Assembly (NCBI GenBank): GCA_001179505.1
Contig: CDMY01000656.1
Location: 124,001-188,000, forward strand
DNA length: 64,000 nt
Direction: 5' to 3'
Source: Vitrella brassicaformis CCMP3155
Lineage: Eukaryota > Protista > Chromerida
Shown: piece after piece, positions 9,874 to 15,654 of the stretch
Position numbering within the stretch: position 1 is the first letter of the stretch
How the letters are laid out: each line of letters opens with the position of its first letter
Translations under genes and position numbers: made by a program
The notes under the pieces: model-generated
Databases searched by the model: none
What the model was told of the DNA's origin: nothing
Seen by the model: only the letters and a program-made list of their open reading frames with translations

Positions 9874-11258
9874 CTATCGGTCGAAGATGCTCCGCGCAAC
9901 AGCGGTCCCCAGCGGCACACGGGCCAGTCGGTGGTCACTGGATGGCGGTCCTTGAACGCCTCACCCGCACCAGCCACGGGCGGCTCAGTCGTGTAGACAG
10001 TGACGCCCACTGCACTCACACAAACGAAAAACAAGGGTGTGAGTGCTCCGTTTTGGGCTGTGCTGTCCAGTGCCATGCCTACCAGGGTCATCGACCATCG
10101 GCAGCTCCACAAGTCGGATCCACGCGACGAAGGCATGGCTGGCGTCCGTCAACACGAGCCGACGGTACCAGTTGACATCGTCGTTGGAGGCGTTGAGGAA
10201 GGCGGTGGTGCTGCTGCATCCCGCCACTGGTGCGTGGGGGGACTGCGTCATCAGGTTGTGCAGCCGATGGTTCTCCACATGCCTGACCACAACACCAGAG
10301 CCCGGCCCGCAGACACGGCATCACCGAGCGACACACGGTAATTAGGCTGAGGGCCCCATTCACCTTTCTATAATGTTTCTCGTTCTGTTGATTTGAGGAT
10401 TGTACTCAAATTTGGAAACCACACGATCAGGACGATGTCCGTGACGGACGACGACAGAGATGAGATGCCGCAACCATGCATCTCCACCCAGCGGTACCCC
10501 GGCCGATAAGTCATATTGATCATGGCCGGCGGATCATCCTGCTGCTGGTGTGGGTTGTACCGAAGGGGCGGGTCGACGACCATCGACTCCCGGAACCACT
10601 CGAGGGTCTTGCCGCCGACGTTGATGTGGCGGCCTACGATCTTGTGGTGGGCCAAAACACGCGCATCCGCCAGAAACGCCTGCAGACACACCGGCCAGAA
10701 GAGGAAAAGGAGTTCAACGGTCATTCATCCTGCCTCCGTTCTTACCGTTTTGTTTGCGTACTGGTGGACGTCAGCAGCCGTGACGGTGAGGGGCAGCTGG
10801 CAACACCCACACTGCCCCGCCAGCTCAATCGCCCTACCCATCTTGCCCCAGCCCCCCGCATCCACCACACACATGGCCGCCAGCAGGTCCGCCACACCCA
10901 TTTCCTGCTCATCGAACCGCAGAAACTCCACCGTTGTCTGCCCATTGACTACGCGCCGCAGCCCCGCCTGTGTGCTGAGGGCGTAGCTGAGCCGCTGCCG
11001 CAGCTGGGCCGCCTTGAAGAGTGCTCTGAGCCATCTGGATGTGCTTCTGAGGCGCATGATGTCGTCAAGGCTGAGCAGGAAGAAGCTGCGCCTCCCGACG
11101 CAGAGGTATGTCACGGGATTCTGCTGCTCCTCCTGCTCCTGTTGCTGCTGCTGTTGTTGCTGTGGCTGCTGTTGCTGTTGCTGCTGTTGGTGTGGTTGAG
11201 GGTTCTTGGGGCGCCACACCAGCCGCCGCCGGTTCTTGTGCGTGTGATGATGCTGCAT
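9874..11258 (-). CDS. Lineage-expanded hypothetical protein family member (F-box-like N-terminal segment, polyQ); possible frameshift near 3' end
   Basis: ORFs 10725..11258, 10368..10724 and 9985..10290 splice into one protein (FFLLSLDDIMRLRSTSRWLRALF...GGWGKMGRAIELAGQCGCCQLPLTVTAADV...IVGRHI...YTTEPPVAG). It is clearly homologous to the gene at 49187..51163. Confidence 0.7.
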
Positions 11259-11438
11259 CGCGACTTACTGAGACGAACCTCGATGAACCCAATGAGGCAT
11301 CGGGCCGATGCGATACTTCTACGAGGCGGCAGCTTTTGCGAAGGCAATCCACTCGAAAGCTCGCATAATGCGGAGAAGGGAAAGGACGAAGGAGGAGGGG
11401 CTGTTGGTAGGCAGTTCACTTTTGAGTAAGTTTGTGCG

Positions 11439-14400
11439 ATGGGCGCGTCAGCATCCTCAGTCAACAGCGGCAGCCTCGCCACCTCCGCCATCCTGGGGCT
11501 GGAGAGCTCCGTGGCGACGGCCCAGGCAGCTGCTGGAGGGGATCCAGCCGCCCTCAACGCTTTCCTGCGAACAGTAATCAATCGAGGCTCTGCCGTGTCA
11601 AATGCCGCTGCAATCACGGTAGCAACACACGCCGCACCACAGACACAGAGGGGAGGTATCGCAGCACGCCTGAATCTGTGTGTTCTCCCATCAGGTATCT
11701 CGCGGCCTCTCGCCGTTGCTGGCCACATCTGACGTGGGCTTTGCGGCGCTGCTTGCGCAGATAGAGCGGGAGCGCCGCGACGGCAACGACGAGGGGGAGT
11801 ACGAGGATGATGAGTACCCCGACAGGGTGGGGCAGGCGTCCCCATGGCGGACGCGGCTGAAGCCCAAACTGGTCGATGGGTGGGAGGGGCCGGCGGGCGA
11901 GTTCCGCTGCCCCATTTGCCTGGACCTCATGGAACATCCGGTCATCACACCCTGCAAGTGAGCGGCAGGGAATGGGGAGGGAGGGAGGGAGGTGAGGCTG
12001 GGATCGTCTGTATGTGTGTGTGCGTGTGGGGCTGGCTGTGTGTTTCAATCAGGCATCTGTTTTGCGGCAACTGTTTGCTGACGGCCCTGTTGCGTCAGTC
12101 GGTGTGTCCGCTGTGCCGCGCCACGGCCTTCGTGGTGCAGCTGCAGCTGCTGCGCACAGATGCCACCAAGGACTCACAGGCCCTCTGGAAGGCATACAGT
12201 GCACTGAAGGTACGCCACAATCACCCCACCCACACACCCCATTCTACTGCACACGATGGATTTTGTTCTATGTCACAGGTGGAGTGTCCCCAGTGTTCAT
12301 GGCGCGGCCCCCTCGCCGACTGGCCGACCCACCGCACACACCGCCGGTCCATCCTGTCATTCACCAAGCGGGCGTCATCCCCCGACTCCCACAACAAGTG
12401 CCAGTGCTGCAGATGCACACAGGCGCGCATCCATTCGCGCAGCAGCAAGCGAGAGGACGGTGAGCCGGGGTCGCCTGTGGGCGGCAAGTTCGTGCGTCAG
12501 CCGCTGCCAACTGGAGCTGGGGAGGGGGAGGGAGAGAGGGAGAGGGTGGTGGTGGATATGGATGAGAGGCCGGAGGGTCCTGTGGAGCGGCTGCTGGCGT
12601 GGCTGGGCAAGCGGCCTTTTGTCAAGGCATCCAGGTAAGTTACGTGGTTCAGAGAATGAGTGGGCTGAGAATGTCTGTGTTCTCGATGCGCCCGTCTTGG
12701 TGTGTGGGTGTCTTCTGTCGCATGCGACGGACGATAGGCTGATGGTTGTGTCGCATCGCATGGAGAATCCCGCCGGGGCTATCGGCGGGTTTATTCTAGG
12801 GTCACAGATCAGCCACACCCAGGTGAGCAGATCCAAACCGACACACATCGACAGACTCATGCACCCTCCTCACATGTGATCAGGCCGTGTTGGAGCTTCA
12901 GCTAGATGCCGCCAGCCGCCCGTCGTCACCCACAGATGGTACCCAGAAGGCCGTCACCTGGTACGCACAAGACACACACACACACTCTCAAGACACACGC
13001 GCAGCCTCCCGGACCCTGTGTGTGTCAGGTATCTGAGCCTGGAGCTGTTCATTGACGAGGGTCTGAAGTGGTGGGTGGGTCGCGAGTTCCCCGAGCTCCG
13101 CCCGTCGGCCTCCACGCTGACCATCTACGACAACCTCAGTCTGGACTGCGCGGCGCTCGTGGCCTTCGTGGTGGAGACGCGGGACCGCCCATACTCACTG
13201 CTCGACTGGAACTGCCAGACATTCGTCAACAAACTCAAGCGTGTCGCACGTGAGTGAGACTCAGCCCTGCACCCCTGCCCCCCACCCACATGAGCACCTC
13301 TGCTGCGTGTGTGTGTGTTGGCTCAGAGGTGGCTGAGATGCGTTGCACCATCCAGTCCATCCCCCGCCCCTTCAGCCGCGCCACCCAGCTGCTGCCGCTC
13401 CTCAACTCGTTCGCATCCTCGGGCATCATCCCAACCCAACTAGACCTTCAGACTGCTGCTGGCGGCACTGTGCGAGCCACCCAACAGCCGGCGACTTCTG
13501 CTACGGTGGCCGCTCGTGTGGGGAAGGTGTCGCTGTGTCTTTACCCCACAGAGGACCGCAATCGGCAGTCACTCAGGCCCGCCGCCCAGCTCACTCGAGG
13601 CGTGATGGACGTCATCACGCGGGCATTGGCGGGCGCGGCAGCCAGCGCCGAGCGAATCCGATCCACAGTGACGGCACCCACATCGGCCGATGCGGAGCAG
13701 GATGACACTGGTGGTGAGCCGCCGCAGCACCAGCCGTCGTCGGCCATGATGAGTGCCCACGAGGATGAAGACAACGTGTCGGTGACTTCCTCCATGTGTA
13801 TATCGGCGAGGAGCGCACGGTCGGAGGCCTTCAGCGGGCGGCAGGTGGCACTCAGATACGACACACTGCCGGTGAGGGAGGCAAGGAGCCGAGAGAGAAG
13901 AAGGGAAGGGAAAAACGAACGACATCCACCACGAGGATCTCTCTTCTGTATCTGTCTGCCTGTCTGTCTGTCTGCTTCCAGGTGGTTGTTCTGGAGCTGC
14001 AGTCGACCTCCCCCCTCCCACCGCCCCCCTCCTCTCCCCACCGCAGCACCAGTGTGGCACCAACCCCCTTCACGCCCTCACCCTCCACCGCCACCTCCAG
14101 CAGCAGCCACGGCCACAAGTACATCACCCATGGCTACCTCAGCCTTGAGTTTAGGTCCGACAGCGGCCTCTTTTGGCACGTCTACGCCGACAAGCCACAG
14201 GCGCTGCGATCATCGGAGCTCGGCGAGGGGAATGGTGTGTCAGTGGACGGGGGGTACCCAAAGGTGGCCACGTGCGAGACCGATTTCGGCGTCGGGAAGC
14301 TGGTCGACTATCTGGAAGGCATCGAAGAGAAAGAGGTGCCTGAGCGGACGGGACAATGGGTGCACATGTCACATCCTGCCTGGCTGCATCTCTGCTTTGC

Positions 14401-14577
14401 GTGTGGTGTGTTGGTGTGTGTCAGTATCATCCGGTTCACTGGAGTTCCTGGTCATTTCTCGAGGGACTTCTCACGCACTGCTGCCCCGCACAGGCAGCCG
14501 ACCTGTTGGCGGCCGAGTTCGGCTCATCAGATGATGCCTCAGAGGGGCCACACACCGCCAGACAGACAACTATCTGA
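11439..14577 (+). CDS. RING (C3HC4) + Zn finger + two tandem permuted-papain-like (PPPDE/LRAT-type) domains; spliced
   Basis: Spliced CPICLDLMEHPVITPCK|HLFCGNCLLTALLRQSVCPLCR; VECPQCSWRGPLADWPTHRTH; repeat 1 SHTQ|AVLELQ...W|YLSLELFIDEGLKWWV...YSLLDWNCQTFV; repeat 2 VVVLELQ...YLSLEFRSDSGLFWHV...|YHPVHWSSWSFL. The RING is certain; the protease fold and first exon are inferred. Confidence 0.8.
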
Positions 14578-15654
14578 GAGAGTGGCTGAGAGGTCCGATT
14601 CGTTTTTTGTTTTGGGGATATGGGATATGGGATATGGGGGACGGCACAGCCTTTTTTGCTTTTTTGCTGAGAGGCATTTTCGCTGGCTAATTTTGTGGCG
14701 TGGACCAACCACATGGCTGGGCCGGGCGGTGTGTGTGAGGCTCATACACATGCATGAGCGCATGCATGCGGTGGAGACTCATGTGATTTGTCGGTTGGTT
14801 GAACCACGTGCACGGCTCTGCTTGACACGCTCCTGCACTATCACTCAGTCAGTCACTGCACCATCGCTGACGTCTACGCATCGGTATTGAGTAGCTTTCA
14901 CCATGACCAGACCATGCATCTGACCTATAGTCATCAACGTACTCGCACACAGGCAGAAAGGCACCACACGACATGCATCCTGACGCAAACCGAACAGCCG
15001 ATCAGACGCAATCGGTATTCGTCCCAAGCTAGCTGTGTCTACAGACATACACAGTCAACCCAGCAGTAGCGCTGCCCGTAGCTCGCTGCCCGATGAAGAA
15101 TGCCCTGCTCTCCCTCTTTTGAGAAGACAACAGAAGGCCCGGTCACTGCCTGGCCGCCGGCCGAATTTGCAGATGGCCGAGAGATGGAAGAGGGATACCA
15201 TGTAAGTCGTTTTTTGGGTGGAGTCTAGATGGACAGACGGGGCTTTGTGAGCACTTTAAATCCACAAGTGCAGTCGACCAAAAGCCAAGAAAACGGCTTT
15301 TATGCCAGTACCCGAAACGATCCCCCGCCAGCCCCGCGACGCAAAAAGGTCCCCCACCTTCCGCTGGACAGCTGCAGCTGCTCAAGCGTTCATGCATGTG
15401 TTCGTGCAGCTGATGGGCGCCAGATATCCCAGGCCTGCAGAGCAGAACGAGCGCGGAGGTGCTGGGGGGTGGCTTCCTCTTCAACACTCCAGCTGCAGTA
15501 TGCCTTGACTGAGTTCATGCATTTGGCACGTCTGTCTTCCTCGCCAAGATATGGTAAGCGAGAGATGGAGCTGTAGTTCAAAGGTTCATCCCCTTGTGCA
15601 CTTTGCCTTTGTCAATCACAGATGGATCAGCAAATCGGCTCGTGTCTCCGCAGC

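Follow-up and report, generated by a model that had tools for sequence, protein, structure and literature searches.

A Vitrella brassicaformis RING protein with two diverged PPPDE-like permuted papain units, one predicted to be active and one predicted to be dead

The window analysed here is a stretch of 64,000 nucleotides from contig CDMY01000656.1 of Vitrella brassicaformis CCMP3155 (assembly GCA_001179505.1), and the element under study is a single gene on its plus strand at positions 11439–14577. The gene has 10 exons and a coding sequence of 2391 nt, read from spliced contigs (796 codons and a stop). We consider it reasonably likely that the product is a cytosolic RING E3 ligase of 796 residues, probably membrane-tethered, whose C-terminal half consists of a duplicated, divergent permuted papain domain of the PPPDE/DeSI-like type (NlpC/P60), with the first copy (unit 1) predicted to be live and the second (unit 2) predicted to be dead.

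Contigs from four public runs (X1, X2, X3 and X6) were mapped onto positions 11000–15200. All nine introns have the form GT..AG and are absent from the contigs of X1, X2 and X6; these runs are not recorded as RNA, and their contigs were read as cDNA because intron-less contigs arise only from cDNA. The X3 contig is colinear with the genome, which shows that X3 was made from DNA. A single contig of X6 (2827 nt) spans 11377–14951 on the plus strand and includes all ten exons, with a 5' untranslated region (UTR) of about 62 nt and a 3' UTR of about 374 nt, and the same joints are present in X1 and X2. The RING and both repeats therefore lie on one mRNA: the gene is expressed as a single transcript carrying all parts, and the single gene assumed in the first-pass annotation, made from the sequence alone, is not a merger of separate transcripts. 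The exons are located at 11439–11618, 11695–11957, 12053–12209, 12279–12634, 12738–12822, 12884–12960, 13029–13249, 13327–13871, 13982–14335 and 14425–14577, ending with a TGA stop at 14575–14577. Because of an in-frame TAA at 11427–11429, shortly upstream, the ATG at 11439 is the earliest possible start. An alternative exon 1 donor at 11573/11574 was rejected, the contigs placing the donor at 11618/11619. All peptides quoted in the first-pass annotation are present in the frames given for them, namely SHTQ/AVLELQ, YLSLELFIDEGLKWWV, VAFVVETRDRPYSLLDWNCQTFV, YDTLP/VVVLELQ, YLSLEFRSDSGLFWHV and EKE/YHPVHWSSWSF (slashes mark exon joints).

The gene was searched exon by exon, and full-length relatives stood in for the whole protein in profile searches and structure prediction. 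A HMMER scan of exon 7 against 1.84 billion representatives returned four long proteins of 650–947 residues (P0002, P0004, P0005 and P0008), and a profile search added BESB_034360 of Besnoitia besnoiti (P0012, 1553 residues, "hypothetical protein"). The same order of elements is found in all five relatives: a conserved LSPLL..SD.G motif (LSPLLATSDVGF in exon 2 of the window, 11707–11742), the RING, a zinc knuckle, unit 1, a PRP-helix (in the window an IPRP-helix at 13359–13436 in exon 8, followed by a disordered linker) and unit 2. P0008 is apparently truncated at its N-terminus, and an open upstream frame on its own contig contains the LSPLL motif and a full RING. Precomputed annotations of the relatives name RING families only.

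Unit 1 occupies 12582–13249 on the plus strand, comprising the end of exon 4 and exons 5–7, and begins with the helix VERLLAWL (12582–12605) followed by the strand LMVVSHRMEN; the limits first assigned to it, 12810–13245, were too narrow. Two motifs, HRMEN (12754–12768) and GAxGG (12775–12789), are invariant in the family alignment. The candidate catalytic residues are a histidine (12814–12816), a tyrosine (13192–13194), an asparagine (13210–13212) and a cysteine (13213–13215), and all four are invariant, in the order found in PPPDE proteins, in 6 of 6 sequences (the window and its five relatives). The proposal that unit 1 has kept its His and Asn-Cys thus extends to the whole family. In Pfam scans PF05903 (PPPDE, Peptidase_C97) was the top or only match other than RING families for five of the six unit 1 sequences, always at profile positions 97–131 (Y-x-L-x3-N-C-x2-F), which cover only the third of the profile around the Cys motif.

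The fold of unit 1 was modelled on residues 242–382 of P0002 with the family alignment, giving a mean predicted local distance difference test (pLDDT) of 87.4 and a predicted template modelling score of 0.82. In an exhaustive comparison of this model with 48,161 PDB representatives, the five best matches were all circularly permuted NlpC/P60 enzymes: TseH (6v98, score 8.4), DeSI (2wp7, 7.1), YiiX (2if6, 6.5), CLN5 (6r99, 6.2) and a Bacillus cereus peptidase (3kw0, 6.1), with the sixth match scoring 4.5. Foldseek placed TseH first and human PPPDE1 second. TseH is a secreted effector of type VI secretion, taken to act on the bacterial cell wall. In the model the histidine is the first residue of a strand (residues 43–52) and the cysteine the first residue of a helix (residues 120–131), so that unit 1 is predicted to have a papain-type arrangement in permuted order. 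The permuted papain-like fold proposed from the motif alone is thereby upheld, as far as a model of a relative can speak for the window. Neighbours of both units in a protein language model include PPPDE, CLN5 and TseH clusters and were treated as leads only; structure searches of BFVD and ESM-Atlas gave unnamed viral or eukaryotic clusters and domains of unknown function alone, from which nothing was concluded.

Unit 2 extends over 13515–14508 on the plus strand. Its first strand and helix (RVGKVSLCLYPTEDRNRQSLRPAAQ, 13515–13589) lie in exon 8, which ends in LRYDTLP, and a long disordered insert follows them. The first-pass limits of 13855–14480 were again too narrow: the start is moved upstream to about 13515, at the strand KVSLCLYPTED, because the structural match begins at the corresponding strand VTLCLFPAED of P0002, and the unit runs to about 14508. 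The model, made on residues 384–650 of P0002, has a pLDDT of 75 overall and above 90 in its structured parts, and its strands and helices follow the order seen in unit 1; CLN5 ranks among the best structural hits for either unit. Where the catalytic histidine would stand (13863–13868 in the window), every member of the family has Thr or Leu, in a TLP motif, and at the position of Asn-Cys (S-S in the window, 14443–14448) every member has small residues in the pattern W-S/G/A-G/S/A-W. The tyrosine seven residues upstream is kept (14425–14427). The loss of His and Cys, first noticed in the window, is thus common to the window and all five relatives. Further features are YLSLEFRSDSGLFWHVY at 14135–14185 and the C-terminal helix THCCPAQAADLL at 14473–14508. 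As judged from the alignment, unit 2 is not decaying and is conserved as well as unit 1, with a mean pairwise identity of 40.7% and 29 invariant columns, compared with 39.4% and 22 invariant columns for unit 1. Unit 2 also has invariant residues of its own that are not found in unit 1, the His of GLxWHxY and one Cys of the HCC/RCC stretch in the C-terminal helix.

The two units had been described as homologous, and they are related beyond chance: exon 7 and exon 9 match each other by BLASTP with an E value of 2e-4, and the two family profiles align by hhalign with a probability of 94.3% and an E value of 1.1e-7 over 72 columns. Both units are interrupted by a phase-0 intron at an equivalent site, SHTQ/AVLELQ in unit 1 and DTLP/VVVLELQ in unit 2, at the same position or one codon apart depending on the register. 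The matching introns fit a tandem duplication.

The C3HC4 RING lies at 11908–12119 on the plus strand, has the form CPIC-x11-CKH-x2-C-x2-C-x10-CPLCR and is interrupted by the intron at 11958–12052. Its first half starts with CPIC in exon 2, which ends in CPICLDLMEHPVITPC; a split Lys codon follows, and the second half continues in exon 3 with HLFCGNCLLTALLRQSVCPLCR. Read directly, with the joint taken from the contigs, all eight metal ligands are present at C3HC4 spacing (CPIC-x11-C-K-H-LF-C-GN-C-x10-CPLC). Exon 2 matches positions 1–18 of the Pfam RING models and exon 3 matches positions 20–40, which independently confirms the joint between the exons. Scored separately, exon 3 reached 21.0 bits with PF00097 (cut-off 21) and exon 2 reached 12.7–17.7 bits; the intact RINGs of P0002, P0004 and P0005 pass Pfam cut-offs with 26.6–39.9 bits (PF13923 cut-off 27, against which relatives reach 38–40 bits), and the P0002 RING matches those of RNF4, RING2 and TRIM21 in the PDB with E values of 1e-12 to 1e-14. 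The RING reported in the first-pass annotation is therefore a complete finger. At what we take to be the E2-contact and "linchpin" positions of RING E3s, the finger has the hydrophobic residue following its first Cys pair (CPIC), the CPLC Pro and the Arg behind the final Cys.

A zinc knuckle follows at the start of exon 4 (CPQCSWRGPLADWPTHRTH, 12285–12341), reading CPQC-x11-H-RT-H. The CxxC...HxxH finger reported earlier is accordingly present in the window, but it does not hold as a family pattern: four of the five relatives have the Cys-ending form C-x2-C-x11-H-x5-C (C2HC), and P0004 differs at the third ligand position. No Pfam family matched the knuckle in scans of the window exons and the relatives. 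Exon 4 also encodes a Cys cluster, CQCCRC (12399–12416), which is found in the window and in none of the relatives and could be a metal or S-acylation site. Just upstream of unit 1 lies VVVDMDE (12546–12566), a hydrophobic core followed by acidic residues that resembles a SUMO-interacting motif; it is weakly conserved, only P0004 having a comparable stretch (EIVVNNTE). At the other end of the RING-containing half, the N-terminus MGASASS (11439–11459) matches the N-myristoylation pattern G2...S6, and a Met-Gly start with a small residue at position 6 is also found in P0002 (MGNQAAQ) and P0004 (MGVPISS). The protein is thus probably N-myristoylated, which would tether it to a membrane.

The mechanism that we favour starts from the RING and knuckle, which would recruit an E2 charged with ubiquitin or a ubiquitin-like modifier and write the mark. 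Unit 1 would then act as a cysteine hydrolase that removes it, most likely by cutting an isopeptide bond to ubiquitin or a ubiquitin-like modifier in the manner of DeSI-1 and DeSI-2, or alternatively by cutting an S-acyl thioester. The fusion to a RING makes ubiquitin or a ubiquitin-like modifier the substrate we prefer, at somewhat less than even confidence. In crystals DeSI-1 is a homodimer whose active site lies in the groove that its subunits form (PMC4281951), and DeSI-1 and DeSI-2 remove SUMO or ubiquitin (PMC4281951, PMC13596326); in a preprint the dimer is described as latent and deubiquitylase activity is assigned to the monomer (PMC13596326). Since the DeSI-1 groove holds the active site, a linked pair of one live and one dead copy would most simply be an intramolecular dimer with one active site. 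Unit 2 would be a pseudo-enzyme that pairs with unit 1 within the chain in place of the second DeSI-1 subunit, where it may complete the substrate groove, alter its shape, gate it or block it, or may itself hold on to the substrate. Overall, this would serve to edit conjugates on a membrane, or to shield the ligase from modifying itself. We infer both the catalytic activity of unit 1 and the reading of the whole protein as an A20-like ubiquitin editor. More tentatively, we suggest as a possibility that the protein is a lineage-restricted (chromerid and coccidian) single-chain writer-eraser in which a fossilised second copy completes or gates the deconjugase or deacylase site that the ligase carries, replacing within one chain the homodimer of DeSI-1.

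Several observations weigh against the assignment of the C-terminal half as a partly active PPPDE-like region. PF05903 never reaches its cut-off of 29.2 bits, the best score being 21.9 bits (unit 1 of P0004), with 12.9 bits for exon 7 of the window; from this shortfall the domain is taken to be a new and very divergent PPPDE-like subfamily. Among PDB sequences, exon 7, unit 1 of P0004 and the profiles of both units found no DeSI or papain-like protein; the only rows returned, a TIR domain of TLR6 (E 0.7) and an acyl-CoA dehydrogenase (E 1.9), were at chance level. The structures were predicted for a relative of approximately 40% identity from alignments of only 7–8 rows. The same fold is compatible with several chemistries: isopeptidases, thioesterases, acyltransferases and cell-wall amidases all belong to this superfamily. 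As for the membrane tether, P0005 begins with MS, the gene model from Besnoitia is extended by a long stretch at its N-terminus, and myristoylation is a reading of the motif.

The alternative that survives best keeps the same architecture but makes unit 1 a depalmitoylase (S-deacylase) or a different thioesterase or acyltransferase that is directed at lipids. At the membrane it would strip lipid anchors from substrates, and the RING would ubiquitinate these substrates. PPPDE1, PPPDE2 and CLN5 have strong S-depalmitoylase activity in vitro that requires the same His and Cys (PMC9012467), so that unit 1 might cut either kind of bond. The rank of CLN5 among the best structural matches of both units points the same way, as does the MG...S N-terminus of the window protein, P0002 and P0004, with its probable myristoyl anchor. 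We nevertheless regard this alternative as unlikely, since the RING fusion and the DeSI literature favour ubiquitin or ubiquitin-like substrates and the thioesterase activity of PPPDE proteins is known on artificial probes only (PMC9012467).

A less probable alternative is that neither unit is catalytic, the C-terminal half serving an otherwise ordinary RING E3 only as a scaffold that binds substrate or ubiquitin, and the His and Cys of unit 1 being structural or metal-binding. A domain too divergent for any Pfam threshold would be consistent with such a role, and unit 2 shows that the family maintains the fold without the dyad. Against this, the His, Tyr, Asn and Cys of unit 1 do not vary among the window and five very distant relatives (about 39% identity), and the model places the His and Cys at the canonical strand start and helix N-terminus. 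The retention of the dyad in unit 1 beside a copy that lacks it argues for selection on catalysis. The first-pass annotation had left the affinity of the units between PPPDE/DeSI and LRAT/PLAAT; the fold and the residue order favour the PPPDE side, and we consider an acyltransferase or phospholipase of the LRAT/PLAAT type (H-box/NC) very improbable for unit 1. In its favour, the H...NC motif is also a signature of LRAT/PLAAT and picornavirus 2A proteins, and the structural matches include PLAAT4 and Aichivirus 2A. Against it, LRAT/PLAAT (PF04970) gave no profile match and is not among the closest structural neighbours.

Other sequences that were recovered were set aside. P0001 is a 139-residue unspliced open reading frame (ORF) call over exons 6 and 7 (window 12887–13257) from a near-identical strain, and was rejected as a separate short protein, as its frame reads through the intron between these exons. 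Its exon parts share approximately 99% identity with the window and carry a single E-to-S change, and its intron part has substitutions and a frame-changing indel, the expected contrast in constraint. P0003, P0006, P0007 and P0009 are bacterial surface-repeat proteins that match low-complexity parts of exon 7, and were discarded. Word-index protein searches recovered only P0002, P0005, P0008 and the Besnoitia protein, and returned neither the window's own annotated protein nor any Toxoplasma orthologue; the method is lossy, and these results are not evidence of absence. NCBIfam gave no match. The P0004 orthologue (Logan SRR25454957 and SRR25454953, G+C 0.43) is an uninterrupted ORF with an LSM gene about 200 nt later (2375–2611 in L002 and 2369–2605 in L003), pointing to a compact genome with few introns or to a polycistron-like contig. 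In the window the G+C content of the region is about 0.6 and the coding sequence is split into short ORFs in varying frames, the pattern that short introns give in a eukaryotic gene. An imperfect triplet repeat of the CTG/CAG type lies just upstream of the gene (11116–11203) and reads on the minus strand as a long poly-Gln run in an ORF at 10725–11258, and a GGGATAT microsatellite of three copies is located in the 3' UTR (14614–14640).

As far as these searches reach, the combination of a RING, a knuckle, a predicted active PPPDE-like unit and a pseudo-PPPDE-like unit is new, its parts being of known kinds; also new within the same reach are the extreme divergence of the domain and the fact that it is conserved in a clade to which both a photosynthetic alga and a coccidian parasite belong. 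No fusion of a RING to a PPPDE domain was found in the literature, of which the coverage was partial, so that an earlier description elsewhere is possible. The PPPDE-like half makes up approximately 60% of the protein and is unannotated in public records, where the proteins appear as "RING-type domain-containing" or "hypothetical". Since a free-living photosynthetic alga and its parasitic coccidian relative Besnoitia have the same layout, it likely has an important role in the shared biology of the lineage. A ligase and a deconjugase in one polypeptide are rare, and where they are found, as in A20, the pairing defines how a signal is edited; if the writer-eraser reading is true, a built-in switch between ligation and removal at the membrane could follow. 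With a predicted live and a predicted dead copy in tandem, the protein is also a natural experiment for the debate on DeSI dimerisation, which turns on whether the groove between the subunits forms the active site or the dimer is a latent form.

Among known proteins, BESB_034360 of Besnoitia shares the LSPLL motif, RING, knuckle, unit 1 (HRMEN...H...WNC), PRP helix and unit 2 (LRYETLP, EFRSD and EYHPTKWSSW) with the window protein, and differs in its length of 1553 residues with long low-complexity inserts; UniRef lists it as a "RING-type domain-containing protein", and no published function was found for it. A20 (TNFAIP3) is similar in concept alone, as a writer and a cysteine-protease eraser in one polypeptide. 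Its activities reside in an OTU domain and the ZnF4 ligase, with no sequence or fold relation to the window protein; no OTU match was found in Pfam scans of the window exons and relatives or in the structural searches, and membership of the OTU/A20 family was rejected. CLN5 is a lysosomal glycoprotein, TseH a secreted bacterial effector and YiiX a bacterial protein, and unlike the window protein none of them is fused to a RING or arranged as a live-plus-dead tandem. DeSI-1 and DeSI-2 (PPPDE2 and PPPDE1; MEROPS C97, PF05903) are among the closest in kind, sharing with unit 1 the fold, as modelled on P0002, and the order His...Tyr...Asn-Cys. The human DeSI proteins are small, single-domain proteins of approximately 140–170 residues that form homodimers, whereas the window protein carries two diverged copies in one chain, one of them predicted to be dead, fused behind a RING and a knuckle, scoring below the Pfam cut-off and bearing in unit 1 its own invariant HRMEN and GAxGG motifs.

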